Positions 433 to 29,058 of a DNA stretch of 64,000 nucleotides are shown here, in pieces. A program made the position numbers and the translations under genes. The notes below the pieces were generated by a model that saw only the letters and a program-made list of their open reading frames with translations, had not been told where the DNA came from and searched no databases. Position 1 is the stretch's first letter. Each line of letters opens with the position of its first letter. This DNA comes from Ylistrum balloti (lineage: Eukaryota), in assembly GCF_031769215.1 (NCBI RefSeq), contig NW_026783211.1:1-64000 (forward strand), read 5' to 3'.

Positions 433-433
433 C

Positions 434-1624: not shown

Positions 1625-1704
1625 AGCCACAAGCAACATAAATTTAATATAAATACCCATTTTCTTTCGCGGGTATATTAAATGACCAGTCAGGCCTTAC
1701 TGTC

Positions 1705-4700
1705 ATGCATTGGAATGCAGGAGGCCTTAAGCCGAAAATTTCAGAATTAAAATCATTTCTGAACGAAAATGCTCCCGATATTTTATGTATTCAGGAAACA
1801 ATGCTTAAACCTAAACACAAAAGTTTCAAAATTAATGGTTACAATCCACCATTTAGGTACGATACGGACCAAGGTTTGGCAATATATATAAAATGCGGAA
1901 TTGCATACAAAGAGTATGAAATCAAAGACCAAGATCTTGTGGCTCTAACCCTACTAGAATAGATGTAGCACGGGGTATAGAATCCCATCTAGATATCACC
2001 CTAGCATCTCCAAACTTAGCTAGTAAATGTAGCTACTGGAACACCCTCGATAGCACTCTAGGTTCCGACCATTACCCAATTTTGACACAGTTTGATTTTA
2101 AACCCCATGTCAATACAATTCAATACCCACCACGATGGGTTTTTAATAAGGCCAATTGGGACCAATTCAAAATTTTAGCAGAAACAATCCAACATGAGGA
2201 AATTTTCGATCAAGATGTTGACGTCTTTAATGCAAATTTAACTAGGGTTATTTTAGATATAGCGTCAACATCTATCCCTAAAACCTCAGGCAAACCCAAA
2301 ACGAGGAAAAACAATCCATGGTGGAACGATGAGTGTAGGTTAGCCAAAAAACTCAAAAAGAATAGCGAAAGGAAATGGAGGGCAAATAAAAATAGTGAAC
2401 TATTAAAAACAGAGTACACAAGATGCAAAACAAACTTCAATAATATCATTCAAAACGCCAAAAACAATCATTGGCAAGAGTTTTGTACATCTTTAAATAA
2501 CAAAACTAATTTGAAAAACGTTTGGTCAAAGGTCAAAGCTATACAGGGAATAAGTAGATCAGAAATCCCTATACTAGGTAAGAACAACATTACCGATAAG
2601 GAAAAGGCAGATACTCTAGCTAAACAATATCAAAAGGCTAGTAGTAATGATAATTTGACCCCTGAATTCAAACTAAATAAAGTTCACAATCAAGTCACCA
2701 TTGATAATGAAATCAAAGACCCAGGCCCTAACACCGGTGATCTCAACTGCCCATTCACAATCACAGAATACAAACAAGCACTACAGAACAAGAGAAACAC
2801 GTCCCCGGGCGATGATAATATTTCATACAACATACTCAAACACTGTCCGGACAACATCACAGACATCATACTCCTTTTTTACAACCACATATGGGACACA
2901 GGTATAATACCTGAATCTTGGAAAAATGCCATTGTTATACCTATACTAAAACCAGGTAAAAATCCACAAGAACCTGCATCATATAGGCCCATAGCTCTAA
3001 CCTCACACCTGTGTAAGGTCATGGAAACTATGGTAAACAATAGGCTAGTACACTCATTAGAAAGATCAGGTATCATAAACGAGGAACAGAGCGGATTCCG
3101 TAAGGGTAGATCGACATTAGACCCACTACTACGACTCACTTCAGAGATAAAAAAAGGTTTTAACCTCAAACAAAACACTCTAGCTGTCTTCTTAGATCTG
3201 GAAAAAGCTTATGATCTCATTTGGCATGACGGACTTCTGGTCTCACTAAAAAAATTCGGCATAACTGGTAACATCTTCAAATTCGTCAACAGTTTCCTTA
3301 AAAACCGTAAAATTCAAGTTAGGATCCATAACACTCTTTCGGATCAACTTGAACTAGACAACGGTGTAGCACAAGGCAGCGTTATTTCTCCAACACTCTT
3401 TAATATTTACATCAACACACTGTCAGATACGCTAAACAACAACACCAAGTTAGCGCAATTTGCAGATGATGGGTGTATCTGGAGTACAGGAAAAAACATT
3501 AGATATCTAACCAAACATATCCAAATAAATCTTACAGCAATTAATGAGTGGGCCAATAAGTGGGGTTTTAAACCATCTAAACAAAAAACTGTAGCAATGT
3601 ATTTCTCTAGAAGTAGAACACTACCAGAACTATACCTAGGCCAGACCAAATTAAAATTTGAAAAACAAGTTAGGTATTTAGGCATGATAATCGATCACAA
3701 ACTCACATGGAGTAAACATATTCAATATGTAAAGGAATCATGCCAAAAGGCAATTAACACCATGAGGTATATTTCTGGTTGTAAATTTGGCGCCAATAAA
3801 ACAACTCAATTAATGTTATATAAGGCCTTAGTTAGATCTAGGTTAGATTACGGGTGCCAGGTATATAATATAGCTAGTGACACAGTATTAAAACATCTAG
3901 ATGTAATACAACACACAGCCTTAAGGGTAGCGCTAAGGGCCATCAAAAACACCAACAGCAATAGTTTACTAGCAGAGGCCGGCGAAACAACATTAACACT
4001 TAGGCGAGAAAACCTTACTCTAAAATACTGGGCTAGAACCCAAAATCATGGGGATAGGTTCTTACTAAACAAAGCAATACAAAATAGTGAAATACCTGTT
4101 ACCAACATCAGGGCTCCCTATCCTTCAGAAATACTTAGATTAAAACAGAAATATGGTTTAGAAGGTGTCAAGATCTCCCGCAAACAAGATTTCCAAGGAC
4201 TCCCTCAGCTCCTTACAATCCTTGACAACTGGAAATAGCAGTAGACCTAAACTGCTTAATGCAATTCATTATATGATCACCGAGATCGATCAATTAGGAA
4301 TAGATCTAAAATTCGAATGGATTCCATCTCATGTCGACATTTTAGGTAACGAGATAGCAGATCAACTCGCTAGAGCAGCCTTAGGGTCACGTGATGTTCA
4401 TCTAAATATAGACTTGAGTGTATCAGAGGTCGTCAGTATAATCAATGACAAAACTCAATTGATAAGGCAGGAAAATTGGTCGAAATTAACTAATAACTGG
4501 CTCTATTCCATCGAGAGCAATGTTAAGATCCAACCTCAGTTATATAGTTATAATAAAGTAGAGGATACTGTTATCACTAGACTTCGATTAGGCTACACCA
4601 AACTCGGTCATAACATCAACCGTATTAAAAAGGAAGTCAGTCCATATTGTCCAAACTGTGGTGAACCGGAAACCATAGAACACATTCTGTTCGAATGCAC

Positions 4701-4866
4701 CACCCATGACAACTTTAGATCAGTTTTCCAAAACCAAATTGAGCATATAGACAATATGAAATTCGATTCCAAAACGGTACTCAACCCTCCAAAACAACAT
4801 AGAAAATATGTATTCGACCAATTAACCTCCTATCTAACGGATATTGATTATATTGATAAAATCTAG
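1705..4866 (+). pseudogene. LINE ORF2 (APE-RT-RNase H-CCHC), copy 1, broken by two frameshifting deletions
   Basis: Deletion of 244 bp at 1947/1948 (equals 25750-25993 of copy 2, includes the GDFNGHH endonuclease motif); second deletion at 4197/4198 removes the YTDGS half of RNase H; ORF-track pieces 1705-1962, 2082-4238, 4165-4866. Confidence 0.92.
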
Positions 4867-5686
4867 GAAAGCGATATAATTATATATATATATATATATA
4901 AAAAAAAAAAAAAATCAAAAAAACACACACACACACACGCAATATACGCAATTATGAGTCCACGTCCAGTATAGAATAAAAACACAAATAGGTACTACTT
5001 GTAGATCGTACAACCACTGCTTACTATAACTGGATAAACAGTGGACGTATTCGAATCTACATGTCCCCAATGGGTGGTCAGTAACCTATGGTAGGTAGGG
5101 AAACCAGGATACACAGCCCTCTGTAATTGACTTTACAGGGAGGTGTATTCAACACTGGACACAGGACTATAATTTCACCACCTCACACTTTTTTTTTAAA
5201 CCATACCCACAACACCACATACACACACAAAAACATCTCCTACATAAATACAACATACACTGGGCCGAAACCCAAAGCCAACAACCATTACAAAATCTCT
5301 TCCACCCTACCTTCCACCTTCTAATATACAAATCCCTGCTCTAGTAGGGTAGACATGTAGACGATTATACACAGTAATCTACAGTCTCCCGAACGACATC
5401 GATTGTATAATAATTCACATTTATTCTCACTAATCCCAAAAATCTACGCTAACCCAATTCCAGCACATTCTTTACATCACCCCATCACATCCACTCTCAT
5501 AACTGAACTTAATAACACAGTTCCCCACTTTTAAAATCCACTCTAGACCAGCATGACTAACCTTGTCAAATGGTGGCTAGTAATCCCATCTACAAATAAC
5601 AAACCTACACCAGCTAACAAGCTAAACCTATTTTCCAATTTCCGACTTTCCCATACACTCTCTCCCGCTATCTTCTAAAACTTCTT

Positions 5687-5780
5687 GTCCTTCGGAAGGG
5701 ACGTTAAACGGGGGTCCGGTGTACAGTGAGTCACGCCGTGCACGTTAAAGAACCTCTGCTGGTTTTCGAAAAAGAGAAGG
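5687..5780 (+). repeat. Segment resembling the Nin/Deu SINE central domain, inside the LINE 3' UTR
   Basis: GTCCTTCGGAAGGGACGTTAAACGGGGGTCC...CACGTTAAAGAACC...TTCGAAAAAGAG resembles, from memory, the DeuSINE/Nin core (GTCTTTCGGATGAGACGTTAAACCGAGG...GACGTAAAAGATCCC...TTCGAAGAAGAG); no database search run. Confidence 0.55.
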
Positions 5781-6096
5781 CTAACTGCTAGCCGCCACAG
5801 AGCATAGGTTTATATTAGGGAAATATAAAGTGAGACTAGAGTAGGACTAGGCGTTTCTGTGACAGTCCAAAATTTCCCCAGTTTTTTTGTTTTTTGTTTT
5901 TTTTTTTTTTCTTTAGACGTTAGGGTATAGATATAGTCAGATCTGTCCTCCCCATATTAGACCTGTTTGGTGATTACTAAAAAGCGAAATTGCACACCCT
6001 AAAGCCTCGGCCCTACCAGCCCCCTCCCCCTTAGTGTCCTAGGCTCGGTTATAACCGGAACAAGGACGTTAAGCTAAAAAAAAAAAAAAAAAAAAA

Positions 6097-6108
6097 GGGC
6101 GGGGCATA
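6097..6108 (+). repeat. Target site / putative 12-bp TSD GGGCGGGGCATA, 3' side of copy 1
   Basis: Directly follows the poly-A; the same 12-mer lies at -72..-61 from the ATG in every uninterrupted H1 unit (e.g. 8558-8569). Confidence 0.85.
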
Positions 6109-6168
6109 CAGCTTACCTAGCACTGACTAGCGCAGTTCTCGAACAATCACATCCAGACGAATCCGAAG

Positions 6169-6726
6169 ATGGCAGAGAAGACTCCAGTGAAGAAAGCAGT
6201 GAAGAAGCCAAAGACCCCGGCAGCTCATCCAAAGTACAGCGACATGGTGGCCACTGCAGTGGGAAGTCTGAAGGAACGTGGAGGCTCGTCCCGTCAGGCA
6301 ATACTGAAATACATCATGGCTAACTTCAAAGTGGGATCCGACGCTAAGGCTATCAACGCACACCTGAAGATCGCCCTCCGGAACGGCGTGAAGAAAGGAG
6401 CCCTGAAACAGTCGAAAGGAACCGGAGCTGCTGGATCATTCAAGCTCGGAGAGAAACCTAAACCCGCCAAAAAACCAGCCGCTAAGAAAGTGGTTAAGCC
6501 GAAAGCAGCAAAACCTAAGAAACCGGCGGCGAAGAAAGCGACTACGTCGGCGACGGCTAAGAAACCAAAGGCAAAGACACCCAAGAAAGCAGCTACCAAG
6601 AAAACCACGGAGAAGAAACCATCCAAGAAAACTACCAAGCCCAAGACCCCTAAGAAAAAGGCTATCAAGTCTCCGAAGAAAGCTAAGACAGACAAGCCTA
6701 AGAAAGCCAAGGCTGCAAAAAAATAA
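6169..6726 (+). CDS. H1: Linker histone H1 (185 aa)
   Basis: Winged-helix globular domain [29 protein letters not shown], Lys/Ala/Pro-rich tail with (S/T)PKK motifs, 3' stem-loop; upstream promoter replaced by LINE tail. Confidence 0.97.
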
Positions 6727-6762
6727 GATGTATATCTTACACCGTCCGAACGACACGTAAAC

Positions 6763-6778
6763 AGTCCTTTTTAGGACT
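6763..6778 (+). other. Histone mRNA 3' stem-loop, H1 variant AGTCCT-TTTT-AGGACT
   Basis: 6-bp stem, 4-nt loop, followed by ACCCA; also at 9224, 11685, 14146, 16607, 19068, 21529. Confidence 0.9.
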
Positions 6779-8459
6779 ACCCACATGTCACGAAAATCAT
6801 CCAATTACGCCTCGAAAAATACGCAAAACGCACTAATCCTAACTTCTTATAATTGACCAACGAACAAACCAACAACACCCTTCCCCACCCCCACCCTCCA
6901 AATACACCCACCTACCCGAAAGTAAAGGAAAATCCACCTTCCCACCCAACCCCACAGGACTACTTCACATCACACACTTTTTTGTTATAAACAATTGATA
7001 CCTGCTACAACTTCTAAGTCGCCGCCCCGTCCCCCGTCTCCCACCCGACAAGTACACACTCACGCCCGGCCCCGCCCATTTATGATTAGGTGAATGAATT
7101 TCAATAATATACACGTTAAACCAACAGTTAATACACCTATAAGCTGACACGGTATCGGTTTATTTCTTAATACTACGCATGTACAATCTGAATTCAAATA
7201 CACAAATGTAGTGTACCGACTAACGCTAAAAATTGCCACTTTCAACCAACAATCATTTCATATATGAAATAATAGTAATGTTTATGTGGAAACTAGTGAA
7301 AACACTTCAAAATCATACTCTGAAATCGAGACAATTTCCGCTATACATTTTTTTTTCAAAATAGTTGAAACAGGTGGTATTATTCCAATTTCCACATATT
7401 TCAGTTTACCCAGTTGCAGGAGTCGTTTTCACTGTCCGTGCACGTGGGTACGTTGTCGTGTATACCTGTGTACGTATGTGTATAGTGCACGATCAAAGGT
7501 AAGTATCGTCGTCGTCTATACGATAGAGAATTATCCTGAATATAAAGTTGTTCTGACTCAAATTTCTAAAGTATAAATTTAACCCAGAATGTATAAAATG
7601 GATGTGTGAGCCAAACACATTTATTGCGAAAGGCTGAGTCCGGGGGCTCCAACCACGGCAGTTTTATTTTTTAAAAATATGAAATCCGATTCTCCTATTT
7701 GTGTGGTTTTGTTTTGTTTTGTGTGTGAGTGTGTGCATGTGTTTTTTTTTTCCTTTTTTCCCCTCTCACCTGTGACTGTTACTAGCGCGCGCACACCCAC
7801 ACCCACAAACACACCCCCATACATACACACCATTTCTTTATTTTCGAGTTCGATATCTAGACAACACAGAATTAATACATGTTTGCGTAGAGTCGAGTCA
7901 AGTACACATGTGTACACGTATATATATGATCACACATACAATACAGCACAACACACATGTGGATACGATGACGTATGAATTGGGAGGGAAAAAAACCCCC
8001 AAAAAACATATTCCATACTTAGAATGTGATATTTGTTAGCAATTAAATGCGATAATCGAATCGAAAATGGTGGAGACTATGGATTGAGATTAAGTATAGC
8101 AGGAATTCGATAAATGTGCTTCCATGTCTATGATATTTACCCATTCTAAATCTAAATTATTCACAAATACCATTTATTACCATATATACAATGAACATGT
8201 ATATATTAAGAAACTAAGTAAATAGTGTGTTTATGAAAATAACGCATATATTACGAATTTAGAACAATTCTATTCAACTAATAGTGAAACCGCACTGACA
8301 AAATTATAGGAAAATGTCATGTAGCTCACTCATTACGAAACCGATTTAAATTTTGAAAACACCATTCGTTTGCCTATCTATCCGTTAGCAAATAGGTGTA
8401 TATATCACTAATTTTCTCCAATAATTTAGAGCTATAAACAACGTTTATTCACACCAAGG

Positions 8460-8569
8460 AAACACAAATTACTTGTTTTCCACACAGACAGGCTAACGCG
8501 CCGTTAGGTGTCCTCGGCGAGGTGCAGCAAAAAGCGCTTAAACGGCTGAGCGAGGACGGGCGGGGCATA
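8460..8569 (+). promoter_or_regulatory. H1 promoter: H1-box (AAACACA, 8460-8466) and GC box (GGGCGGGGC, 8558-8566); no canonical TATA
   Basis: Both motifs are known H1 promoter elements; repeated every 2461 bp; also a short palindrome CTAACG-CGC-CGTTAG at 8493-8507. Confidence 0.7.
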
Positions 8570-8629
8570 CAGCTTACCTAGCACTGACTAGCGCAGTTCT
8601 CGAACAATCACATCCAGACGAATCCGAAG

Positions 8630-9187
8630 ATGGCAGAGAAGACTCCAGTGAAGAAAGCAGTGAAGAAGCCAAAGACCCCGGCAGCTCATCCAAAGTACAG
8701 CGACATGGTGGCCACTGCAGTGGGAAGTCTGAAGGAACGTGGAGGCTCGTCCCGTCAGGCAATACTGAAATACATCATGGCTAACTTCAAAGTGGGATCC
8801 GACGCTAAGGCTATCAACGCACACCTGAAGATCGCCCTCCGGAACGGCGTGAAGAAAGGAGCCCTGAAACAGTCGAAAGGAACCGGAGCTGCTGGATCAT
8901 TCAAGCTCGGAGAGAAACCTAAACCCGCCAAAAAACCAGCCGCTAAGAAAGTGGTTAAGCCGAAAGCAGCAAAACCTAAGAAACCGGCGGCGAAGAAAGC
9001 GACTACGTCGGCGACGGCTAAGAAACCAAAGGCAAAGACACCCAAGAAAGCAGCTACCAAGAAAACCACGGAGAAGAAACCATCCAAGAAAACTACCAAG
9101 CCCAAGACCCCTAAGAAAAAGGCTATCAAGTCTCCGAAGAAAGCTAAGACAGACAAGCCTAAGAAAGCCAAGGCTGCAAAAAAATAA
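8630..9187 (+). CDS. H1: Linker histone H1 (185 aa)
   Basis: Protein identical to 6169-6726. Confidence 0.97.
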
Positions 9188-11090
9188 CATGTATATCTTA
9201 CACCGTCCGAACGACACGTAAACAGTCCTTTTTAGGACTACCCACATGTCACGAAAATCATCCAATTACGCCTCGAAAAATACGCAAAACGCACTAATCC
9301 TAACTTCTTATAATTGACCAACGAACAAACCAACAACACCCTTCCCCACCCCCACCCTCCAAATACACCCACCTACCCGAAAGTAAAGGAAAATCCACCT
9401 TCCCACCCAACCCCACAGGACTACTTCACATCACACACTTTTTTGTTATAAACAATTGATACCTGCTACAACTTCTAAGTCGCCGCCCCGTCCCCCGTCT
9501 CCCACCCGACAAGTACACACTCACGCCCGGCCCCGCCCATTTATGATTAGGTGAATGAATTTCAATAATATACACGTTAAACCAACAGTTAATACACCTA
9601 TAAGCTGACACGGTATCGGTTTATTTCTTAATACTACGCATGTACAATCTGAATTCAAATACACAAATGTAGTGTACCGACTAACGCTAAAAATTGCCAC
9701 TTTCAACCAACAATCATTTCATATATGAAATAATAGTAATGTTTATGTGGAAACTAGTGAAAACACTTCAAAATCATACTCTGAAATCGAGACAATTTCC
9801 GCTATACATTTTTTTTTCAAAATAGTTGAAACAGGTGGTATTATTCCAATTTCCACATATTTCAGTTTACCCAGTTGCAGGAGTCGTTTTCACTGTCCGT
9901 GCACGTGGGTACGTTGTCGTGTATACCTGTGTACGTATGTGTATAGTGCACGATCAAAGGTAAGTATCGTCGTCGTCTATACGATAGAGAATTATCCTGA
10001 ATATAAAGTTGTTCTGACTCAAATTTCTAAAGTATAAATTTAACCCAGAATGTATAAAATGGATGTGTGAGCCAAACACATTTATTGCGAAAGGCTGAGT
10101 CCGGGGGCTCCAACCACGGCAGTTTTATTTTTTAAAAATATGAAATCCGATTCTCCTATTTGTGTGGTTTTGTTTTGTTTTGTGTGTGAGTGTGTGCATG
10201 TGTTTTTTTTTTCCTTTTTTCCCCTCTCACCTGTGACTGTTACTAGCGCGCGCACACCCACACCCACAAACACACCCCCATACATACACACCATTTCTTT
10301 ATTTTCGAGTTCGATATCTAGACAACACAGAATTAATACATGTTTGCGTAGAGTCGAGTCAAGTACACATGTGTACACGTATATATATGATCACACATAC
10401 AATACAGCACAACACACATGTGGATACGATGACGTATGAATTGGGAGGGAAAAAAACCCCCAAAAAACATATTCCATACTTAGAATGTGATATTTGTTAG
10501 CAATTAAATGCGATAATCGAATCGAAAATGGTGGAGACTATGGATTGAGATTAAGTATAGCAGGAATTCGATAAATGTGCTTCCATGTCTATGATATTTA
10601 CCCATTCTAAATCTAAATTATTCACAAATACCATTTATTACCATATATACAATGAACATGTATATATTAAGAAACTAAGTAAATAGTGTGTTTATGAAAA
10701 TAACGCATATATTACGAATTTAGAACAATTCTATTCAACTAATAGTGAAACCGCACTGACAAAATTATAGGAAAATGTCATGTAGCTCACTCATTACGAA
10801 ACCGATTTAAATTTTGAAAACACCATTCGTTTGCCTATCTATCCGTTAGCAAATAGGTGTATATATCACTAATTTTCTCCAATAATTTAGAGCTATAAAC
10901 AACGTTTATTCACACCAAGGAAACACAAATTACTTGTTTTCCACACAGACAGGCTAACGCGCCGTTAGGTGTCCTCGGCGAGGTGCAGCAAAAAGCGCTT
11001 AAACGGCTGAGCGAGGACGGGCGGGGCATACAGCTTACCTAGCACTGACTAGCGCAGTTCTCGAACAATCACATCCAGACGAATCCGAAG

Positions 11091-11648
11091 ATGGCAGAGA
11101 AGACTCCAGTGAAGAAAGCAGTGAAGAAGCCAAAGACCCCGGCAGCTCATCCAAAGTACAGCGACATGGTGGCCACTGCAGTGGGAAGTCTGAAGGAACG
11201 TGGAGGCTCGTCCCGTCAGGCAATACTGAAATACATCATGGCTAACTTCAAAGTGGGATCCGACGCTAAGGCTATCAACGCACACCTGAAGATCGCCCTC
11301 CGGAACGGCGTGAAGAAAGGAGCCCTGAAACAGTCGAAAGGAACCGGAGCTGCTGGATCATTCAAGCTCGGAGAGAAACCTAAACCCGCCAAAAAACCAG
11401 CCGCTAAGAAAGTGGTTAAGCCGAAAGCAGCAAAACCTAAGAAACCGGCGGCGAAGAAAGCGACTACGTCGGCGACGGCTAAGAAACCAAAGGCAAAGAC
11501 ACCCAAGAAAGCAGCTACCAAGAAAACCACGGAGAAGAAACCATCCAAGAAAACTACCAAGCCCAAGACCCCTAAGAAAAAGGCTATCAAGTCTCCGAAG
11601 AAAGCTAAGACAGACAAGCCTAAGAAAGCCAAGGCTGCAAAAAAATAA
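11091..11648 (+). CDS. H1: Linker histone H1 (185 aa)
   Basis: Protein identical to 6169-6726. Confidence 0.97.
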
Positions 11649-13551
11649 CATGTATATCTTACACCGTCCGAACGACACGTAAACAGTCCTTTTTAGGACT
11701 ACCCACATGTCACGAAAATCATCCAATTACGCCTCGAAAAATACGCAAAACGCACTAATCCTAACTTCTTATAATTGACCAACGAACAAACCAACAACAC
11801 CCTTCCCCACCCCCACCCTCCAAATACACCCACCTACCCGAAAGTAAAGGAAAATCCACCTTCCCACCCAACCCCACAGGACTACTTCACATCACACACT
11901 TTTTTGTTATAAACAATTGATACCTGCTACAACTTCTAAGTCGCCGCCCCGTCCCCCGTCTCCCACCCGACAAGTACACACTCACGCCCGGCCCCGCCCA
12001 TTTATGATTAGGTGAATGAATTTCAATAATATACACGTTAAACCAACAGTTAATACACCTATAAGCTGACACGGTATCGGTTTATTTCTTAATACTACGC
12101 ATGTACAATCTGAATTCAAATACACAAATGTAGTGTACCGACTAACGCTAAAAATTGCCACTTTCAACCAACAATCATTTCATATATGAAATAATAGTAA
12201 TGTTTATGTGGAAACTAGTGAAAACACTTCAAAATCATACTCTGAAATCGAGACAATTTCCGCTATACATTTTTTTTTCAAAATAGTTGAAACAGGTGGT
12301 ATTATTCCAATTTCCACATATTTCAGTTTACCCAGTTGCAGGAGTCGTTTTCACTGTCCGTGCACGTGGGTACGTTGTCGTGTATACCTGTGTACGTATG
12401 TGTATAGTGCACGATCAAAGGTAAGTATCGTCGTCGTCTATACGATAGAGAATTATCCTGAATATAAAGTTGTTCTGACTCAAATTTCTAAAGTATAAAT
12501 TTAACCCAGAATGTATAAAATGGATGTGTGAGCCAAACACATTTATTGCGAAAGGCTGAGTCCGGGGGCTCCAACCACGGCAGTTTTATTTTTTAAAAAT
12601 ATGAAATCCGATTCTCCTATTTGTGTGGTTTTGTTTTGTTTTGTGTGTGAGTGTGTGCATGTGTTTTTTTTTTCCTTTTTTCCCCTCTCACCTGTGACTG
12701 TTACTAGCGCGCGCACACCCACACCCACAAACACACCCCCATACATACACACCATTTCTTTATTTTCGAGTTCGATATCTAGACAACACAGAATTAATAC
12801 ATGTTTGCGTAGAGTCGAGTCAAGTACACATGTGTACACGTATATATATGATCACACATACAATACAGCACAACACACATGTGGATACGATGACGTATGA
12901 ATTGGGAGGGAAAAAAACCCCCAAAAAACATATTCCATACTTAGAATGTGATATTTGTTAGCAATTAAATGCGATAATCGAATCGAAAATGGTGGAGACT
13001 ATGGATTGAGATTAAGTATAGCAGGAATTCGATAAATGTGCTTCCATGTCTATGATATTTACCCATTCTAAATCTAAATTATTCACAAATACCATTTATT
13101 ACCATATATACAATGAACATGTATATATTAAGAAACTAAGTAAATAGTGTGTTTATGAAAATAACGCATATATTACGAATTTAGAACAATTCTATTCAAC
13201 TAATAGTGAAACCGCACTGACAAAATTATAGGAAAATGTCATGTAGCTCACTCATTACGAAACCGATTTAAATTTTGAAAACACCATTCGTTTGCCTATC
13301 TATCCGTTAGCAAATAGGTGTATATATCACTAATTTTCTCCAATAATTTAGAGCTATAAACAACGTTTATTCACACCAAGGAAACACAAATTACTTGTTT
13401 TCCACACAGACAGGCTAACGCGCCGTTAGGTGTCCTCGGCGAGGTGCAGCAAAAAGCGCTTAAACGGCTGAGCGAGGACGGGCGGGGCATACAGCTTACC
13501 TAGCACTGACTAGCGCAGTTCTCGAACAATCACATCCAGACGAATCCGAAG

Positions 13552-14109
13552 ATGGCAGAGAAGACTCCAGTGAAGAAAGCAGTGAAGAAGCCAAAGACCC
13601 CGGCAGCTCATCCAAAGTACAGCGACATGGTGGCCACTGCAGTGGGAAGTCTGAAGGAACGTGGAGGCTCGTCCCGTCAGGCAATACTGAAATACATCAT
13701 GGCTAACTTCAAAGTGGGATCCGACGCTAAGGCTATCAACGCACACCTGAAGATCGCCCTCCGGAACGGCGTGAAGAAAGGAGCCCTGAAACAGTCGAAA
13801 GGAACCGGAGCTGCTGGATCATTCAAGCTCGGAGAGAAACCTAAACCCGCCAAAAAACCAGCCGCTAAGAAAGTGGTTAAGCCGAAAGCAGCAAAACCTA
13901 AGAAACCGGCGGCGAAGAAAGCGACTACGTCGGCGACGGCTAAGAAACCAAAGGCAAAGACACCCAAGAAAGCAGCTACCAAGAAAACCACGGAGAAGAA
14001 ACCATCCAAGAAAACTACCAAGCCCAAGACCCCTAAGAAAAAGGCTATCAAGTCTCCGAAGAAAGCTAAGACAGACAAGCCTAAGAAAGCCAAGGCTGCA
14101 AAAAAATAA
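13552..14109 (+). CDS. H1: Linker histone H1 (185 aa)
   Basis: Protein identical to 6169-6726. Confidence 0.97.
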
Positions 14110-16012
14110 GATGTATATCTTACACCGTCCGAACGACACGTAAACAGTCCTTTTTAGGACTACCCACATGTCACGAAAATCATCCAATTACGCCTCGAAA
14201 AATACGCAAAACGCACTAATCCTAACTTCTTATAATTGACCAACGAACAAACCAACAACACCCTTCCCCACCCCCACCCTCCAAATACACCCACCTACCC
14301 GAAAGTAAAGGAAAATCCACCTTCCCACCCAACCCCACAGGACTACTTCACATCACACACTTTTTTGTTATAAACAATTGATACCTGCTACAACTTCTAA
14401 GTCGCCGCCCCGTCCCCCGTCTCCCACCCGACAAGTACACACTCACGCCCGGCCCCGCCCATTTATGATTAGGTGAATGAATTTCAATAATATACACGTT
14501 AAACCAACAGTTAATACACCTATAAGCTGACACGGTATCGGTTTATTTCTTAATACTACGCATGTACAATCTGAATTCAAATACACAAATGTAGTGTACC
14601 GACTAACGCTAAAAATTGCCACTTTCAACCAACAATCATTTCATATATGAAATAATAGTAATGTTTATGTGGAAACTAGTGAAAACACTTCAAAATCATA
14701 CTCTGAAATCGAGACAATTTCCGCTATACATTTTTTTTTCAAAATAGTTGAAACAGGTGGTATTATTCCAATTTCCACATATTTCAGTTTACCCAGTTGC
14801 AGGAGTCGTTTTCACTGTCCGTGCACGTGGGTACGTTGTCGTGTATACCTGTGTACGTATGTGTATAGTGCACGATCAAAGGTAAGTATCGTCGTCGTCT
14901 ATACGATAGAGAATTATCCTGAATATAAAGTTGTTCTGACTCAAATTTCTAAAGTATAAATTTAACCCAGAATGTATAAAATGGATGTGTGAGCCAAACA
15001 CATTTATTGCGAAAGGCTGAGTCCGGGGGCTCCAACCACGGCAGTTTTATTTTTTAAAAATATGAAATCCGATTCTCCTATTTGTGTGGTTTTGTTTTGT
15101 TTTGTGTGTGAGTGTGTGCATGTGTTTTTTTTTTCCTTTTTTCCCCTCTCACCTGTGACTGTTACTAGCGCGCGCACACCCACACCCACAAACACACCCC
15201 CATACATACACACCATTTCTTTATTTTCGAGTTCGATATCTAGACAACACAGAATTAATACATGTTTGCGTAGAGTCGAGTCAAGTACACATGTGTACAC
15301 GTATATATATGATCACACATACAATACAGCACAACACACATGTGGATACGATGACGTATGAATTGGGAGGGAAAAAAACCCCCAAAAAACATATTCCATA
15401 CTTAGAATGTGATATTTGTTAGCAATTAAATGCGATAATCGAATCGAAAATGGTGGAGACTATGGATTGAGATTAAGTATAGCAGGAATTCGATAAATGT
15501 GCTTCCATGTCTATGATATTTACCCATTCTAAATCTAAATTATTCACAAATACCATTTATTACCATATATACAATGAACATGTATATATTAAGAAACTAA
15601 GTAAATAGTGTGTTTATGAAAATAACGCATATATTACGAATTTAGAACAATTCTATTCAACTAATAGTGAAACCGCACTGACAAAATTATAGGAAAATGT
15701 CATGTAGCTCACTCATTACGAAACCGATTTAAATTTTGAAAACACCATTCGTTTGCCTATCTATCCGTTAGCAAATAGGTGTATATATCACTAATTTTCT
15801 CCAATAATTTAGAGCTATAAACAACGTTTATTCACACCAAGGAAACACAAATTACTTGTTTTCCACACAGACAGGCTAACGCGCCGTTAGGTGTCCTCGG
15901 CGAGGTGCAGCAAAAAGCGCTTAAACGGCTGAGCGAGGACGGGCGGGGCATACAGCTTACCTAGCACTGACTAGCGCAGTTCTCGAACAATCACATCCAG
16001 ACGAATCCGAAG

Positions 16013-16570
16013 ATGGCAGAGAAGACTCCAGTGAAGAAAGCAGTGAAGAAGCCAAAGACCCCGGCAGCTCATCCAAAGTACAGCGACATGGTGGCCACTG
16101 CAGTGGGAAGTCTGAAGGAACGTGGAGGCTCGTCCCGTCAGGCAATACTGAAATACATCATGGCTAACTTCAAAGTGGGATCCGACGCTAAGGCTATCAA
16201 CGCACACCTGAAGATCGCCCTCCGGAACGGCGTGAAGAAAGGAGCCCTGAAACAGTCGAAAGGAACCGGAGCTGCTGGATCATTCAAGCTCGGAGAGAAA
16301 CCTAAACCCGCCAAAAAACCAGCCGCTAAGAAAGTGGTTAAGCCGAAAGCAGCAAAACCTAAGAAACCGGCGGCGAAGAAAGCGACTACGTCGGCGACGG
16401 CTAAGAAACCAAAGGCAAAGACACCCAAGAAAGCAGCTACCAAGAAAACCACGGAGAAGAAACCATCCAAGAAAACTACCAAGCCCAAGACCCCTAAGAA
16501 AAAGGCTATCAAGTCTCCGAAGAAAGCTAAGACAGACAAGCCTAAGAAAGCCAAGGCTGCAAAAAAATAA
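16013..16570 (+). CDS. H1: Linker histone H1 (185 aa)
   Basis: Protein identical to 6169-6726. Confidence 0.97.
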
Positions 16571-18473
16571 GATGTATATCTTACACCGTCCGAACGACAC
16601 GTAAACAGTCCTTTTTAGGACTACCCACATGTCACGAAAATCATCCAATTACGCCTCGAAAAATACGCAAAACGCACTAATCCTAACTTCTTATAATTGA
16701 CCAACGAACAAACCAACAACACCCTTCCCCACCCCCACCCTCCAAATACACCCACCTACCCGAAAGTAAAGGAAAATCCACCTTCCCACCCAACCCCACA
16801 GGACTACTTCACATCACACACTTTTTTGTTATAAACAATTGATACCTGCTACAACTTCTAAGTCGCCGCCCCGTCCCCCGTCTCCCACCCGACAAGTACA
16901 CACTCACGCCCGGCCCCGCCCATTTATGATTAGGTGAATGAATTTCAATAATATACACGTTAAACCAACAGTTAATACACCTATAAGCTGACACGGTATC
17001 GGTTTATTTCTTAATACTACGCATGTACAATCTGAATTCAAATACACAAATGTAGTGTACCGACTAACGCTAAAAATTGCCACTTTCAACCAACAATCAT
17101 TTCATATATGAAATAATAGTAATGTTTATGTGGAAACTAGTGAAAACACTTCAAAATCATACTCTGAAATCGAGACAATTTCCGCTATACATTTTTTTTT
17201 CAAAATAGTTGAAACAGGTGGTATTATTCCAATTTCCACATATTTCAGTTTACCCAGTTGCAGGAGTCGTTTTCACTGTCCGTGCACGTGGGTACGTTGT
17301 CGTGTATACCTGTGTACGTATGTGTATAGTGCACGATCAAAGGTAAGTATCGTCGTCGTCTATACGATAGAGAATTATCCTGAATATAAAGTTGTTCTGA
17401 CTCAAATTTCTAAAGTATAAATTTAACCCAGAATGTATAAAATGGATGTGTGAGCCAAACACATTTATTGCGAAAGGCTGAGTCCGGGGGCTCCAACCAC
17501 GGCAGTTTTATTTTTTAAAAATATGAAATCCGATTCTCCTATTTGTGTGGTTTTGTTTTGTTTTGTGTGTGAGTGTGTGCATGTGTTTTTTTTTTCCTTT
17601 TTTCCCCTCTCACCTGTGACTGTTACTAGCGCGCGCACACCCACACCCACAAACACACCCCCATACATACACACCATTTCTTTATTTTCGAGTTCGATAT
17701 CTAGACAACACAGAATTAATACATGTTTGCGTAGAGTCGAGTCAAGTACACATGTGTACACGTATATATATGATCACACATACAATACAGCACAACACAC
17801 ATGTGGATACGATGACGTATGAATTGGGAGGGAAAAAAACCCCCAAAAAACATATTCCATACTTAGAATGTGATATTTGTTAGCAATTAAATGCGATAAT
17901 CGAATCGAAAATGGTGGAGACTATGGATTGAGATTAAGTATAGCAGGAATTCGATAAATGTGCTTCCATGTCTATGATATTTACCCATTCTAAATCTAAA
18001 TTATTCACAAATACCATTTATTACCATATATACAATGAACATGTATATATTAAGAAACTAAGTAAATAGTGTGTTTATGAAAATAACGCATATATTACGA
18101 ATTTAGAACAATTCTATTCAACTAATAGTGAAACCGCACTGACAAAATTATAGGAAAATGTCATGTAGCTCACTCATTACGAAACCGATTTAAATTTTGA
18201 AAACACCATTCGTTTGCCTATCTATCCGTTAGCAAATAGGTGTATATATCACTAATTTTCTCCAATAATTTAGAGCTATAAACAACGTTTATTCACACCA
18301 AGGAAACACAAATTACTTGTTTTCCACACAGACAGGCTAACGCGCCGTTAGGTGTCCTCGGCGAGGTGCAGCAAAAAGCGCTTAAACGGCTGAGCGAGGA
18401 CGGGCGGGGCATACAGCTTACCTAGCACTGACTAGCGCAGTTCTCGAACAATCACATCCAGACGAATCCGAAG

Positions 18474-19031
18474 ATGGCAGAGAAGACTCCAGTGAAGAAA
18501 GCAGTGAAGAAGCCAAAGACCCCGGCAGCTCATCCAAAGTACAGCGACATGGTGGCCACTGCAGTGGGAAGTCTGAAGGAACGTGGAGGCTCGTCCCGTC
18601 AGGCAATACTGAAATACATCATGGCTAACTTCAAAGTGGGATCCGACGCTAAGGCTATCAACGCACACCTGAAGATCGCCCTCCGGAACGGCGTGAAGAA
18701 AGGAGCCCTGAAACAGTCGAAAGGAACCGGAGCTGCTGGATCATTCAAGCTCGGAGAGAAACCTAAACCCGCCAAAAAACCAGCCGCTAAGAAAGTGGTT
18801 AAGCCGAAAGCAGCAAAACCTAAGAAACCGGCGGCGAAGAAAGCGACTACGTCGGCGACGGCTAAGAAACCAAAGGCAAAGACACCCAAGAAAGCAGCTA
18901 CCAAGAAAACCACGGAGAAGAAACCATCCAAGAAAACTACCAAGCCCAAGACCCCTAAGAAAAAGGCTATCAAGTCTCCGAAGAAAGCTAAGACAGACAA
19001 GCCTAAGAAAGCCAAGGCTGCAAAAAAATAA
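18474..19031 (+). CDS. H1: Linker histone H1 (185 aa)
   Basis: Protein identical to 6169-6726. Confidence 0.97.
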
Positions 19032-20934
19032 GATGTATATCTTACACCGTCCGAACGACACGTAAACAGTCCTTTTTAGGACTACCCACATGTCACGAAA
19101 ATCATCCAATTACGCCTCGAAAAATACGCAAAACGCACTAATCCTAACTTCTTATAATTGACCAACGAACAAACCAACAACACCCTTCCCCACCCCCACC
19201 CTCCAAATACACCCACCTACCCGAAAGTAAAGGAAAATCCACCTTCCCACCCAACCCCACAGGACTACTTCACATCACACACTTTTTTGTTATAAACAAT
19301 TGATACCTGCTACAACTTCTAAGTCGCCGCCCCGTCCCCCGTCTCCCACCCGACAAGTACACACTCACGCCCGGCCCCGCCCATTTATGATTAGGTGAAT
19401 GAATTTCAATAATATACACGTTAAACCAACAGTTAATACACCTATAAGCTGACACGGTATCGGTTTATTTCTTAATACTACGCATGTACAATCTGAATTC
19501 AAATACACAAATGTAGTGTACCGACTAACGCTAAAAATTGCCACTTTCAACCAACAATCATTTCATATATGAAATAATAGTAATGTTTATGTGGAAACTA
19601 GTGAAAACACTTCAAAATCATACTCTGAAATCGAGACAATTTCCGCTATACATTTTTTTTTCAAAATAGTTGAAACAGGTGGTATTATTCCAATTTCCAC
19701 ATATTTCAGTTTACCCAGTTGCAGGAGTCGTTTTCACTGTCCGTGCACGTGGGTACGTTGTCGTGTATACCTGTGTACGTATGTGTATAGTGCACGATCA
19801 AAGGTAAGTATCGTCGTCGTCTATACGATAGAGAATTATCCTGAATATAAAGTTGTTCTGACTCAAATTTCTAAAGTATAAATTTAACCCAGAATGTATA
19901 AAATGGATGTGTGAGCCAAACACATTTATTGCGAAAGGCTGAGTCCGGGGGCTCCAACCACGGCAGTTTTATTTTTTAAAAATATGAAATCCGATTCTCC
20001 TATTTGTGTGGTTTTGTTTTGTTTTGTGTGTGAGTGTGTGCATGTGTTTTTTTTTTCCTTTTTTCCCCTCTCACCTGTGACTGTTACTAGCGCGCGCACA
20101 CCCACACCCACAAACACACCCCCATACATACACACCATTTCTTTATTTTCGAGTTCGATATCTAGACAACACAGAATTAATACATGTTTGCGTAGAGTCG
20201 AGTCAAGTACACATGTGTACACGTATATATATGATCACACATACAATACAGCACAACACACATGTGGATACGATGACGTATGAATTGGGAGGGAAAAAAA
20301 CCCCCAAAAAACATATTCCATACTTAGAATGTGATATTTGTTAGCAATTAAATGCGATAATCGAATCGAAAATGGTGGAGACTATGGATTGAGATTAAGT
20401 ATAGCAGGAATTCGATAAATGTGCTTCCATGTCTATGATATTTACCCATTCTAAATCTAAATTATTCACAAATACCATTTATTACCATATATACAATGAA
20501 CATGTATATATTAAGAAACTAAGTAAATAGTGTGTTTATGAAAATAACGCATATATTACGAATTTAGAACAATTCTATTCAACTAATAGTGAAACCGCAC
20601 TGACAAAATTATAGGAAAATGTCATGTAGCTCACTCATTACGAAACCGATTTAAATTTTGAAAACACCATTCGTTTGCCTATCTATCCGTTAGCAAATAG
20701 GTGTATATATCACTAATTTTCTCCAATAATTTAGAGCTATAAACAACGTTTATTCACACCAAGGAAACACAAATTACTTGTTTTCCACACAGACAGGCTA
20801 ACGCGCCGTTAGGTGTCCTCGGCGAGGTGCAGCAAAAAGCGCTTAAACGGCTGAGCGAGGACGGGCGGGGCATACAGCTTACCTAGCACTGACTAGCGCA
20901 GTTCTCGAACAATCACATCCAGACGAATCCGAAG

Positions 20935-21492
20935 ATGGCAGAGAAGACTCCAGTGAAGAAAGCAGTGAAGAAGCCAAAGACCCCGGCAGCTCATCCAAAG
21001 TACAGCGACATGGTGGCCACTGCAGTGGGAAGTCTGAAGGAACGTGGAGGCTCGTCCCGTCAGGCAATACTGAAATACATCATGGCTAACTTCAAAGTGG
21101 GATCCGACGCTAAGGCTATCAACGCACACCTGAAGATCGCCCTCCGGAACGGCGTGAAGAAAGGAGCCCTGAAACAGTCGAAAGGAACCGGAGCTGCTGG
21201 ATCATTCAAGCTCGGAGAGAAACCTAAACCCGCCAAAAAACCAGCCGCTAAGAAAGTGGTTAAGCCGAAAGCAGCAAAACCTAAGAAACCGGCGGCGAAG
21301 AAAGCGACTACGTCGGCGACGGCTAAGAAACCAAAGGCAAAGACACCCAAGAAAGCAGCTACCAAGAAAACCACGGAGAAGAAACCATCCAAGAAAACTA
21401 CCAAGCCCAAGACCCCTAAGAAAAAGGCTATCAAGTCTCCGAAGAAAGCTAAGACAGACAAGCCTAAGAAAGCCAAGGCTGCAAAAAAATAA
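20935..21492 (+). CDS. H1: Linker histone H1 (185 aa)
   Basis: Protein identical to 6169-6726. Confidence 0.97.
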
Positions 21493-23323
21493 GATGTATA
21501 TCTTACACCGTCCGAACGACACGTAAACAGTCCTTTTTAGGACTACCCACATGTCACGAAAATCATCCAATTACGCCTCGAAAAATACGCAAAACGCACT
21601 AATCCTAACTTCTTATAATTGACCAACGAACAAACCAACAACACCCTTCCCCACCCCCACCCTCCAAATACACCCACCTACCCGAAAGTAAAGGAAAATC
21701 CACCTTCCCACCCAACCCCACAGGACTACTTCACATCACACACTTTTTTGTTATAAACAATTGATACCTGCTACAACTTCTAAGTCGCCGCCCCGTCCCC
21801 CGTCTCCCACCCGACAAGTACACACTCACGCCCGGCCCCGCCCATTTATGATTAGGTGAATGAATTTCAATAATATACACGTTAAACCAACAGTTAATAC
21901 ACCTATAAGCTGACACGGTATCGGTTTATTTCTTAATACTACGCATGTACAATCTGAATTCAAATACACAAATGTAGTGTACCGACTAACGCTAAAAATT
22001 GCCACTTTCAACCAACAATCATTTCATATATGAAATAATAGTAATGTTTATGTGGAAACTAGTGAAAACACTTCAAAATCATACTCTGAAATCGAGACAA
22101 TTTCCGCTATACATTTTTTTTTCAAAATAGTTGAAACAGGTGGTATTATTCCAATTTCCACATATTTCAGTTTACCCAGTTGCAGGAGTCGTTTTCACTG
22201 TCCGTGCACGTGGGTACGTTGTCGTGTATACCTGTGTACGTATGTGTATAGTGCACGATCAAAGGTAAGTATCGTCGTCGTCTATACGATAGAGAATTAT
22301 CCTGAATATAAAGTTGTTCTGACTCAAATTTCTAAAGTATAAATTTAACCCAGAATGTATAAAATGGATGTGTGAGCCAAACACATTTATTGCGAAAGGC
22401 TGAGTCCGGGGGCTCCAACCACGGCAGTTTTATTTTTTAAAAATATGAAATCCGATTCTCCTATTTGTGTGGTTTTGTTTTGTTTTGTGTGTGAGTGTGT
22501 GCATGTGTTTTTTTTTTCCTTTTTTCCCCTCTCACCTGTGACTGTTACTAGCGCGCGCACACCCACACCCACAAACACACCCCCATACATACACACCATT
22601 TCTTTATTTTCGAGTTCGATATCTAGACAACACAGAATTAATACATGTTTGCGTAGAGTCGAGTCAAGTACACATGTGTACACGTATATATATGATCACA
22701 CATACAATACAGCACAACACACATGTGGATACGATGACGTATGAATTGGGAGGGAAAAAAACCCCCAAAAAACATATTCCATACTTAGAATGTGATATTT
22801 GTTAGCAATTAAATGCGATAATCGAATCGAAAATGGTGGAGACTATGGATTGAGATTAAGTATAGCAGGAATTCGATAAATGTGCTTCCATGTCTATGAT
22901 ATTTACCCATTCTAAATCTAAATTATTCACAAATACCATTTATTACCATATATACAATGAACATGTATATATTAAGAAACTAAGTAAATAGTGTGTTTAT
23001 GAAAATAACGCATATATTACGAATTTAGAACAATTCTATTCAACTAATAGTGAAACCGCACTGACAAAATTATAGGAAAATGTCATGTAGCTCACTCATT
23101 ACGAAACCGATTTAAATTTTGAAAACACCATTCGTTTGCCTATCTATCCGTTAGCAAATAGGTGTATATATCACTAATTTTCTCCAATAATTTAGAGCTA
23201 TAAACAACGTTTATTCACACCAAGGAAACACAAATTACTTGTTTTCCACACAGACAGGCTAACGCGCCGTTAGGTGTCCTCGGCGAGGTGCAGCAAAAAG
23301 CGCTTAAACGGCTGAGCGAGGAC

Positions 23324-23335
23324 GGGCGGGGCATA
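23324..23335 (+). repeat. Target site / putative 12-bp TSD GGGCGGGGCATA, 5' side of copy 2 (promoter of an eighth H1 unit)
   Basis: H1 spacer and promoter continue normally up to this 12-mer (expected ATG at 23396 = +72) and then switch to GGCATACAG plus LINE 5' UTR. Confidence 0.85.
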
Positions 23336-24199
23336 GGCATACAGAAAATACCACTGACCCCCGAGCTGTCGACACCTACCTACAGGCTTAGAGTACCTTT
23401 GTTACCTGTCATCAACGATATAGTGTTAGGTTACATCATTCACCAACAGTCTTTTCTATATATATATATTCCATATATTCTTCTGGAATATATTGTGTAA
23501 TTCCTGTGGACTTTTTTTTTTTCTTTCTTTTTTTGATGTGTTAATTCTATCGGCAGACCGAGGATTAATTAGACAACAGAGTTCCCGAGAAATCCATCAG
23601 AAGGATAAGTACTTTTCAAGATTTCTTATTAATCATTTAGTCGCTATCTCGTATTTTAGCGTCGGGAACTGATAATAAATAGTATCCTGGTCTGTATAAT
23701 TTATTATTTAGATACCTTGTTTAAGGAGTTTTATAGTGATACTATAGTTATAACTAGATTCAGCTATATATCAAATACAATAGGAAGGTCCAAACAGTAT
23801 TAGGTAGAGTTATAATTCTGTAGAAAATATTTCATATTTTATATATCTCTGATACATATAACCTTTATTTTATCTATTTTCTTATCGGGCTATTCATTTC
23901 GGACCATTTTTAAGACGGCCTTATAAAGTGCCATCCCAACCCCAAAAACAAAAGAAAAACTGTATCTGGTTCCTGTCCATTGTCTTTCCGTGGCCAGATA
24001 TCACACTTTCACACCTGACTACACAACCTCTGCTATCCAGACCACTACTTTCACGCTTGATATGTATATTATCTCAATCAAGGTCTCTGTCGCTCCGTCT
24101 CCAGGTAACACACCAGACCTTTTATTCTAGACTAATTAGGATCTCCCCACAGGAATTCCTCTCACCCTTTTCCCTCTGTCAACTAACTACAAACACAAC

Positions 24200-25426
24200 A
24201 TGGCTGGCCCAACCACAAACAAACCCGCCGTAGTTATACTGACCCCTAGGGATAAAAAACCACTACATGCGGGACGTGTTCGCGGGGACATATCCCAATA
24301 CACAGGGGTAACCAGTGACGTCAGGGACGTCAAGATGCTACCATCAGGTATCATATTAGTTCTCTGCGCCACAGCGATGTGCATAACAAAGGCGATGAAA
24401 ATCGCATGTATAGATGGTACACCATGTACAACACGGCTATCTAAACGGCCATATACAAACTCCCCACCTAGACGCAAACAAAAAATGACTCGCACAACAA
24501 CAAAGGGGGTCATCTATCGGATCCCCCTCAACACGTCATTAACATCATTAAACAAAATAAACAATGTCAAGACAGCCAGTAGGATGCACAACAAAGACAA
24601 ACAACCTACTACATCCATCCTACTGGAATTTCACTCAAACACTCTACCTAAAGAAATCAAATTTAACAAAATCACATATCCAGTAACAAAATTCAACGTA
24701 CCACGCAAACAACAAAAACCTACTACAAAGCATACAAAACCAAAATATTCCCAGTGCTCAACAACCCAAATCACCTACAACAAAACTACAACAAATCGAC
24801 TGTACTCGGCAGTCGTACAAAACAACACTCCGCAAAATAACACAAACAAACACACCAACACTACTACAACCATTAACTCACAAATAACACCTACACAACA
24901 CGGAGTATTAGTCACCACAGAGCTACTCGGCAATATTGTCCTGTTAGCACGTGATCAAACACTCACAGACAGACAAGCACTACAAAAAGTCAGGGCCCTA
25001 ATAAACAAACAAAACGGGTTCCCGGCACCTCAAGTCACACCCATAAATAAACTGACACAAACAACACCCACACAAACCTCACCAACACAGCCAAAACCAA
25101 CACAGTCCACACCAACAACATCACCTACACTTTTCTCAACACAAACAACACCCCAAACCTTAATAACAACCACACAAACCAAAAACACTCCTACACAACA
25201 AACAATACACCTTCTGGATAGTTCTGGAGAGTTAGACGACTCGTTTCTGTCCAAACCTCCCACACCTCGCTCTCCTACTGGATTGGGTAGACGTAGGACA
25301 CAAACAAACAATAAAACAACACCAAAAAACAAACAAACAACACCGACACGCCCTAACACCAGATCACGGGCAAAACACACCGCCAATCAGCCGAGACCTG
25401 GAAATAGCAAACGACAGCTTTACTAG
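24200..25426 (+). CDS. LINE ORF1 protein (408 aa), nucleic-acid binding/chaperone-like
   Basis: Position before ORF2; KGVIYRIP and TSILLEF..LPKEI motifs recall I/Nimb ORF1p; Thr/Gln/Pro-rich disordered and basic C-terminus. Confidence 0.8.
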   Translation: MAGPTTNKPAVVILTPRDKKPLHAGRVRGDISQYTGVTSDVRDVKMLPSGIILVLCATAMCITKAMKIACIDGTPCTTRLSKRPYTNSPPRRKQKMTRTTTKGVIYRIPLNTSLTSLNKINNVKTASRMHNKDKQPTTSILLEFHSNTLPKEIKFNKITYPVTKFNVPRKQQKPTTKHTKPKYSQCSTTQITYNKTTTNRLYSAVVQNNTPQNNTNKHTNTTTTINSQITPTQHGVLVTTELLGNIVLLARDQTLTDRQALQKVRALINKQNGFPAPQVTPINKLTQTTPTQTSPTQPKPTQSTPTTSPTLFSTQTTPQTLITTTQTKNTPTQQTIHLLDSSGELDDSFLSKPPTPRSPTGLGRRRTQTNNKTTPKNKQTTPTRPNTRSRAKHTANQPRPGNSKRQLY

Positions 25427-25506
25427 AGCCACAAGCAACATAAATTTAATATAAATACCCATTTTCTTTCGCGGGTATATTAAATGACCAGTCAGGCCTT
25501 ACTGTC

Positions 25507-28425: not shown

Positions 28426-28437
<12 letters not shown>
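25507..28437 (+). pseudogene. LINE ORF2 (APE endonuclease, RT, RNase H N-half), copy 2; +1 frameshift in A8 at 27195-27202, truncated at the junction
   Basis: Complete APE (HWN, QET, NIY, GDFNGHH, HLDITL, SDHYPI); RT continues in the next frame after the A8 run (A7 in copy 1); YTDGS RNase H motif at about 28381. Confidence 0.9.

Positions 28438-29058
<621 letters not shown>

Follow-up and report, generated by a model that had tools for sequence, protein, structure and literature searches.

A LINE family with a strong but not exclusive preference for one position in the histone H1 promoter of Ylistrum balloti

Why do two copies of a long interspersed nuclear element (LINE) meet a histone H1 array of Ylistrum balloti at the same nucleotide of the H1 promoter? 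The question is raised by the first 64 kb of contig C1354 (NW_026783211.1, positions 1 to 64,000, here called the window) of a 648-Mb assembly. The window begins at the contig start and holds LINE copy 1 (1-6096), an H1 array (6097-23335), LINE copy 2 (23353-28443), and a series of core-histone quartets, all on the + strand unless stated otherwise. A first-pass annotation had read the two junctions as the halves of one insertion site and the family as specialized on the H1 promoter. According to the present analysis, it is likely that the element strongly prefers one position of the H1 promoter and integrates there by target-primed reverse transcription; the preference is real, strong, and probably long-standing, but not exclusive.

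The array is composed of seven H1 units of 2461 bp each, every one of which carries a Linker_histone open reading frame (ORF) of 185 aa (the first at 6169-6726); the H1 coding sequence stays intact, as had been noted earlier. In intact units, the site sequence is GAGGAC/GGGCGGGGCATACAGC, where the slash marks the junction, and the 12-mer GGGCGGGGCATA lies at -72 to -61 relative to the H1 ATG (6169). A pattern search of the window found this 12-mer eight times at an exact spacing of 2461 bp, with a chance expectation of 0; six of the eight are uninterrupted sites (8558, 11019, 13480, 15941, 18402, and 20863). Array periods were taken from pattern and BLAST spacing, as Tandem Repeats Finder is blind to them (periods >500). 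The poly(A)21 tail of copy 1 (6076-6096) abuts the 12-mer at 6097-6108, which belongs to the downstream copy of the target, GGGCGGGGCATAC(A), at 6097-6110; this comprises the GC box of the H1 promoter and a CATA motif and starts at -72 from the ATG. The CATA motif lies approximately 30 nt upstream of an initiator-like CAGT motif. The same 12-mer recurs at 23324-23335, on the 5' side of copy 2, and is followed by non-H1 sequence. Both junctions thus stand where the first-pass annotation had placed them, and the nick site is G+C-rich without an A/T tract, with no A/T-rich sequence on the target side of the tail. The statement that copy 2 follows immediately after the 12-mer holds for the non-H1 sequence, which starts at 23336, but not for the element body, which starts at 23353 after a filler at 23336-23352.

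A genome search in which the 500 nt at the 3' end of the element served as the query gave 165 candidates, of which the 40 best were scored; 30 3' ends were fetched. The exact junction poly(A)/GGGCGGGGCATACAG was found at C1354, C1188 (twice), C205, and C107, counted as five contigs. On C1023, a junction variant, poly(A)/GGGGCATACAG, is offset by 4 nt, and a noisy stretch on C872 is the same 3' junction badly assembled. The poly(A) at H1 sites is approximately 18-24 long in four copies. Copies with both ends show a duplication of 13-14 bp, GGGCGGGGCATAC(A), which replaces the 12 bp given previously. For instance, C205 holds a 5'-truncated copy of 1.58 kb with GGGCGGGGCATAC(A) at both sides, which is a textbook target-primed insertion. 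The copy on C107 is only 84-89% identical to the young ones, and has the identical 3' junction; the H1 unit in which it resides is diverged as well (85-95%). A 43-nt tail ending in poly(A) precedes the upstream copy of its target site and represents another insertion at this position. In the 648 Mb, promoter sites with the upstream half number only 42 and are spread over six contigs. Taken together, at least eight separate events lie at GAGGAC/GGGCGGGG, one nucleotide position within a target of a few hundred positions in 648 Mb, and a chance origin is excluded.

The 5' junctions at the H1 site all differ, and no junction type was found twice. In the window, the site is followed by GGCATACAGAAAATACC, and the filler of copy 2 is made up of GGCATACAG, which repeats target letters 7-15, and then AAAATACC; it is unlike the filler of every other copy. 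At C1188:3262, the junction contains 26 nt of filler rich in GATAC/CATAC; at C1188:17916, the element is truncated by approximately 55 nt and the filler is different; at C1188:32484, the target is short of approximately 36 bp and the element of 87 nt; and at C872:7216, another CATAC-rich filler is present. These differing 5' junctions indicate separate target-primed insertions and uphold the earlier proposal of one preferred insertion site, now as a site reused by independent retrotransposition events. The motif CATACAG (target letters 9-15) stands directly before the 5' end of the element, also in two copies with non-H1 flanks (L035 and L041). Two candidate 5' junctions, C879:569 and C205:3762, were rejected because both are intact sites. 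Two matches were set aside as too short to serve as evidence: CACTGAC, which the element's 5' end has in common with the H1 leader, and AGGACG, which occurs in both the tail and the nick site.

The complete element is best seen on contig C1188 (39 kb), where three full-length copies reside within an H1 array. A full copy is approximately 7.2 kb long and consists of a 5' untranslated region (UTR) of approximately 880 nt starting with ACTGACC, ORF1, ORF2, a 3' UTR of approximately 1.3 kb, and poly(A). Both ORFs are open in all three copies, which differ by 0-1 residues. ORF1 encodes 408 aa of low complexity, with neither a Pfam match nor a CCHC pattern in these 408 aa. ORF2 encodes 1244 aa with the Pfam domains Exo_endo_phos_2 (93-207), RVT_1 (498-744), RNase_H (955-1083, E 2.7e-13), and zf-RVT (1159-1192), in keeping with the apurinic endonuclease-like (APE), reverse transcriptase (RT), and RNase H regions recognized in the first reading. 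The order APE-RT-RNase H is that of the I group (I/Nimb/LOA/Ingi-like) of LINEs, and it is by this domain order that the element would be assigned to I/Nimb. The APE model has a pLDDT (predicted local distance difference test) of 94, its fold matches the TRAS1 and L1 endonucleases, and the catalytic residues (D, N, and H) do not vary across the homologues. Sequence and fold searches of the PDB confirmed LINE-type APE, RT, and RNase H but did not separate the clades. A scan of the H1 unit and copy 2 against Rfam found no ribozyme or other RNA family within the element. The protein nearest to ORF2 is an 85% identical fragment labeled 'invertebrate metagenome', while all others, from bivalve or other animal LINEs, are approximately 40% identical or less; these nearest proteins are unnamed or automatically named. 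Both they and the H1 protein agree with a bivalve source. This fragment, covering RT-RNase H, is encoded on NSIT01000299.1 (GCA_002794085.1, L044), is 81% identical at the DNA level, and probably stems from a related bivalve whose host DNA was sequenced along with a symbiont metagenome; its contig stops within the 3' UTR, so no junction is readable there.

The family is also found outside histone genes. The off-target flanks have no common motif beyond a weak GGA/GAG before the nick, the short off-target copies with both ends have their own 7-12 bp duplications at other sequences, and the off-target A-runs are 11-20 long. In a maximum-likelihood tree of the last 1 kb, which is ladder-like, the scattered copies form the older rungs, while the youngest clade (support 99/96) contains every H1 copy of young age together with one copy in an H3 promoter (C253). 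The remaining two members of this clade have truncated or noisy 3' tails, and the old H1 copy of C107 is an outlier of the tree. The H3-promoter copy (C253:9445-9941, L014) is a young copy whose poly(A) is joined to TCTCTCATTC, with the H3 TATA-like box upstream and a cap-like CATTC downstream; its junction is the only one of its type in the assembly. A diverged subfamily was observed at C246:491-2797 and C781:106331-106891 (L008, L025, and L027), in which a full tail is followed by one or more short tail-only copies in tandem arrays, each tail-only copy having its own A-run plus an 11-bp duplication.

The pattern at the H1 site is consistent with the following course of insertion. The bottom strand would be broken between GAGGAC and GGGCGGGG in the top-strand reading, that is, at 6096/6097. 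The primer ends in CCGCCC-3', the T's of the cDNA follow, and the poly(A) joins without A/T microhomology. The cuts are staggered by 13-14 bp, and the duplication puts the GC box and the CATA motif on either side of the element. Specificity may come mainly from the element's own protein, namely the APE domain, perhaps together with another DNA-binding part. Off-target insertions with ordinary duplications would build up elsewhere as fossils, while copies in H1 arrays may stay young through array turnover, by analogy with R1 and R2 in ribosomal DNA. An insertion would leave the full upstream H1 promoter plus the core motif before the element and only the core motif before the H1 gene. CATACAG at the 5' ends suggests, as far as the sequence can tell, that copies resident in H1 supply the source RNAs and that these begin inside the duplicated site. 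It is conceivable, and is put forward here tentatively, that the lineage lives in the promoter of H1 as a replication-dependent histone gene, that it cuts between the upstream H1 elements and the GC box/CATA motif, that the core promoter is duplicated to serve both the element and H1, that the element is transcribed from the histone promoter, and that the scattered copies are strays of H1-resident masters. If true, this would be the first LINE specific for the promoter of a protein-coding gene, and it would belong to an RNase H clade not known for target specificity.

The shared 3' junction could also reflect descent, if one or a few H1 insertions had been multiplied by unequal crossover or gene conversion, a possibility already raised by the first-pass annotation. 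Tandem arrays are known to homogenize, and the H1-resident copies are nearly identical: over 5 kb, those of C1188 differ from one another by no more than 5 substitutions, and 14 separate them from window copy 2; the C1188 copies, moreover, are spaced exactly three units apart. However, unequal crossover and conversion copy both junctions unchanged and create no new duplications, and the at least five different 5' junctions, with distinct fillers and truncation points, contradict this. The truncated 1.58 kb copy with its own duplication, the tail-only fragment, and the old copy in a diverged unit also speak against multiplication, and several 5' junction alleles in single individuals are already suggested by the short-read contigs described below; such an origin is very unlikely. 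An assembly artefact, in which redundant haplotigs, collapsed arrays, or a chimeric consensus create the appearance of repeated junctions, would be in line with the noise at contig ends, a mosaic stretch at 28444-28676, the garbling of H1 units in C872 and C879, and the position of most H1 arrays on short contigs. It is barely credible, since the absence of any junction type found twice shows that the contigs are not duplicates of one locus, the sequence around the junctions of C1188 and the window is clean, its H1 units being 100% identical and its ORFs open, and the element, the H1 spacer, and a variety of 5' junctions recur in independent short-read contigs.

Two further explanations accept repeated insertion and place its cause elsewhere. 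The targeting could be driven by RNA, if read-through H1 letters behind the A-run annealed to a nicked H1 promoter and the endonuclease itself were non-specific; priming by 3' read-through has been shown for R1. Such a mechanism would agree with the similar poly(A) lengths at H1 sites, with off-target copies showing that the enzyme nicks many sequences, with a primer end (CCGCCC) that is unable to pair with poly(A), and with the target-derived letters borne by the 5' ends as well. Yet the off-target A-runs are of similar length, no off-target copy has transduced H1 letters behind its tail, the constant stagger points to a defined pair of cuts, and the first colonization of H1 would still need a separate cause, which makes RNA-driven targeting unlikely. 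Alternatively, the locus itself could make the hot spot, either by tethering to a histone-promoter factor (a GC-box or TATA-binding factor) or the histone locus body or through recurrent nicks or R-loops at a very active G-rich promoter. Ty3 and the Dictyostelium TRE elements are known to integrate position-specifically by tethering, and the young C253 copy immediately upstream of the H3 cap-like CATTC, as well as the involvement of an H2A promoter in the mosaic, would fit. On the other hand, at least six events have a 3' junction precise to a single nucleotide, a single H3 case was found in the genome, and the H2A mosaic is probably an artefact; a locus-made hot spot is accordingly judged improbable.

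Site preference of the element itself remains the favored reading, and several observations weigh against it. Approximately 20 of the 30 fetched 3' ends, at 90-98% identity, have unrelated flanks, and the share of off-target copies may be larger, since the best 40 of 165 candidates were scored. Unrelated flanks at most other copies had been named by the first-pass annotation as a finding that would refute its reading, and this is literally the situation at most of the approximately 40 scored 3' ends. In addition, the H1 clade is only slightly younger than some scattered copies (L004, L009, L010, and L011), and L035 and L036 have H1 at the 3' side but non-H1 5' flanks. The three C1188 copies (C1188:3262-39174, L031-L034) are each three H1 units apart, with a period of approximately 14.6 kb, and such exact spacing, which independent insertions do not explain, may point to a degree of block duplication. 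Parts of the arrays are badly assembled (C872 and C879 are noisy, and the window contains the mosaic), so the counts are approximate. What had been described as a family specialized on the H1 promoter is thus borne out for the youngest clade, which is histone-associated, and by the old outlying copy of C107, while most 3' ends with their unrelated flanks do not fit specialization; on these grounds, the weaker claim of a preference is retained.

Further joints between the element and H1 arrays were observed. L010 (C1023:38200-45427) adjoins an H1 array by its 5' end. At C1023:45427-45650 (L039 and L049), approximately 215 nt of the element's 3' UTR separate a full-length copy, at its 5' end, from the H1 upstream region, which breaks off approximately 50 bp short of the GC box. 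This arrangement suggests a template switch at the 5' end of the RNA. The sequence GGGCGGGGCAT, 130 nt upstream of the C1023:45427 copy, was considered as a copy of the site and rejected, as it represents a variant form of a fragment from inside the element's 3' UTR. At C879:5343-5821 (L006), a tail without poly(A) is joined through an AGCT microhomology at approximately codon 20 of an H1 coding sequence, which reflects either a deletion after insertion or atypical priming.

Both LINE copies of the window are incomplete. Copy 1 is rearranged, with positions 1-427 inverted in comparison with all other copies; this stretch, at the contig end, is element 5' UTR with 96% identity. Its order runs from inverted canonical position ~453 to 15 and then directly from ~901, and the contig starts inside the inversion, so that the 5' side is cut and the 5' flank is unreadable. 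The geometry of the inversion fits twin priming, and a fold-back artefact at the contig end could also explain it. Copy 1 has internal deletions at 1946/1947 (243 nt), 4197/4198 (328 nt, at the start of RNase H), and 5188/5189 (~120 nt), and retains an ORF1 remnant (533-1624) and the RT (2082-4238). Copy 2 has the canonical 5' end ACTGACC and an open ORF1 of 408 aa (24200-25426), while its ORF2 (25507-27210 and 27644-28477) is split by one extra base at ~27195 that is absent from short-read contigs. It is without the 3' third and the 3' end of the element and enters the mosaic with the H2A promoter.

The mosaic (28444-28676) is composed of alternating pieces of 10-40 nt from the RNase H region of the LINE and from the H2B-H2A spacer and promoter, and in the alignment its indels extend into the first H2A gene. 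It was compared with Logan short-read contigs of three other samples (two organism labels) aligned to 22900-28670. In these three samples, the contigs do not bridge 28444-28676 but jump from 28440 to 28636, and loose contig ends near the mosaic run on as canonical element or canonical H2A spacer. The mosaic is probably an assembly chimera that fuses copy 2 to the core-histone array through a consensus of reads from two loci, and taken as such, it means that C1354 is no reliable evidence for H1 and core arrays being neighbors. The same contigs contain the intact H1 site plus additional 5' junction variants. Their k-mer depth is 2100-3900 for the H1 spacer and 180-240 for the element 5' UTR, so full-length copies would occupy at most 1/10 of the H1 units. 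In the second organism label (X5), the element and the H1 spacer are also present, but near-identical. The remainder of the window (28671-64000) consists of approximately seven units of 4.86-4.92 kb, 98-100% identical, with the quartet H3+, H4+, H2B-, and H2A+. A histone 3' stem-loop-like element (e.g., 21524-21568), scoring below the Rfam gathering threshold, is present in every H1 unit, and the long antisense ORFs listed across the histone genes are of mechanical origin. Past the core-histone array, at C1354:77695-85065, the contig carries another H1 array, which runs in the opposite orientation and comprises at least four units.

Target-specific LINEs are known to use ribosomal RNA (rRNA), small-RNA, and spliced-leader genes, transposons, microsatellites, and telomeres, and belong mostly to early-branching, Tx1, and R1 groups (PMC4640811). 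Insertion into multicopy genes as a 'safe haven' has been described for the Tx1 clade (Tx1, Keno, Mutsu, and Dewa), Utopia, NeSL, and R2 (PMC4640811). Their targets differ from the present one, being small nuclear RNA, transfer RNA, 5S, spliced-leader, or rRNA genes or transposons, and Utopia, NeSL, and R2 employ a restriction-like endonuclease. The known targets listed in the same source include no histone genes (PMC4640811). Similarly, a full-text literature search found no LINE reported as targeting histone genes, although a Repbase-only or unpublished description may exist. When the family is set against the criteria of Kojima and Fujiwara, insertion was found repeatedly at the same nucleotide, and a majority of copies in the target was found in the youngest clade only. 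A histone promoter as the homing site of a LINE would represent a new class of safe haven, and the family would show a state between dispersed and site-specific life styles that bears on the evolution of specificity. The insertions break histone arrays, which is of practical concern for the assembly of bivalve histone arrays and for copy-number work.

Ty3 and the Dictyostelium TRE5/TRE3 elements resemble the present family in integrating near the transcription start or promoter of a gene family, in their case RNA polymerase III genes; they are tethered and scatter in position, whereas the 3' junction described here is exact to the nucleotide. TRAS1 and SART1, LINEs of the R1 clade with telomeric repeats as their target, share the APE fold, as the TRAS1 endonuclease (1WDU) matches the model with a TM score of 0.72-0.81 and a phmmer E of 1.5e-10, and a sequence-defined nick in a repeated target is found on both sides of the comparison. 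The target differs, the endonuclease identity is approximately 21%, and RNase H is present here. CCHC zinc knuckles in ORF1 are typical of the I factor and R1, and the ORF2 of the R1 clade is not known to carry RNase H. The family departs from the I clade proper in its ORF1 without CCHC knuckles, and from R1 in this ORF1, in having RNase H in ORF2, and in its many off-target copies; where R1 uses an rRNA gene, the target here is the RNA polymerase II promoter of a protein-coding histone gene. Its APE endonuclease, if the G+C-rich site is what it recognizes, would allow a comparison with R1 and TRAS. With R1 (R1Bm and its relatives, specific for 28S ribosomal DNA), the family has in common the well-known features of an APE endonuclease, one precise position within a tandemly repeated gene family, a duplication of approximately 14 bp, constant 3' and variable 5' junctions, young residents, and tandem re-insertions.

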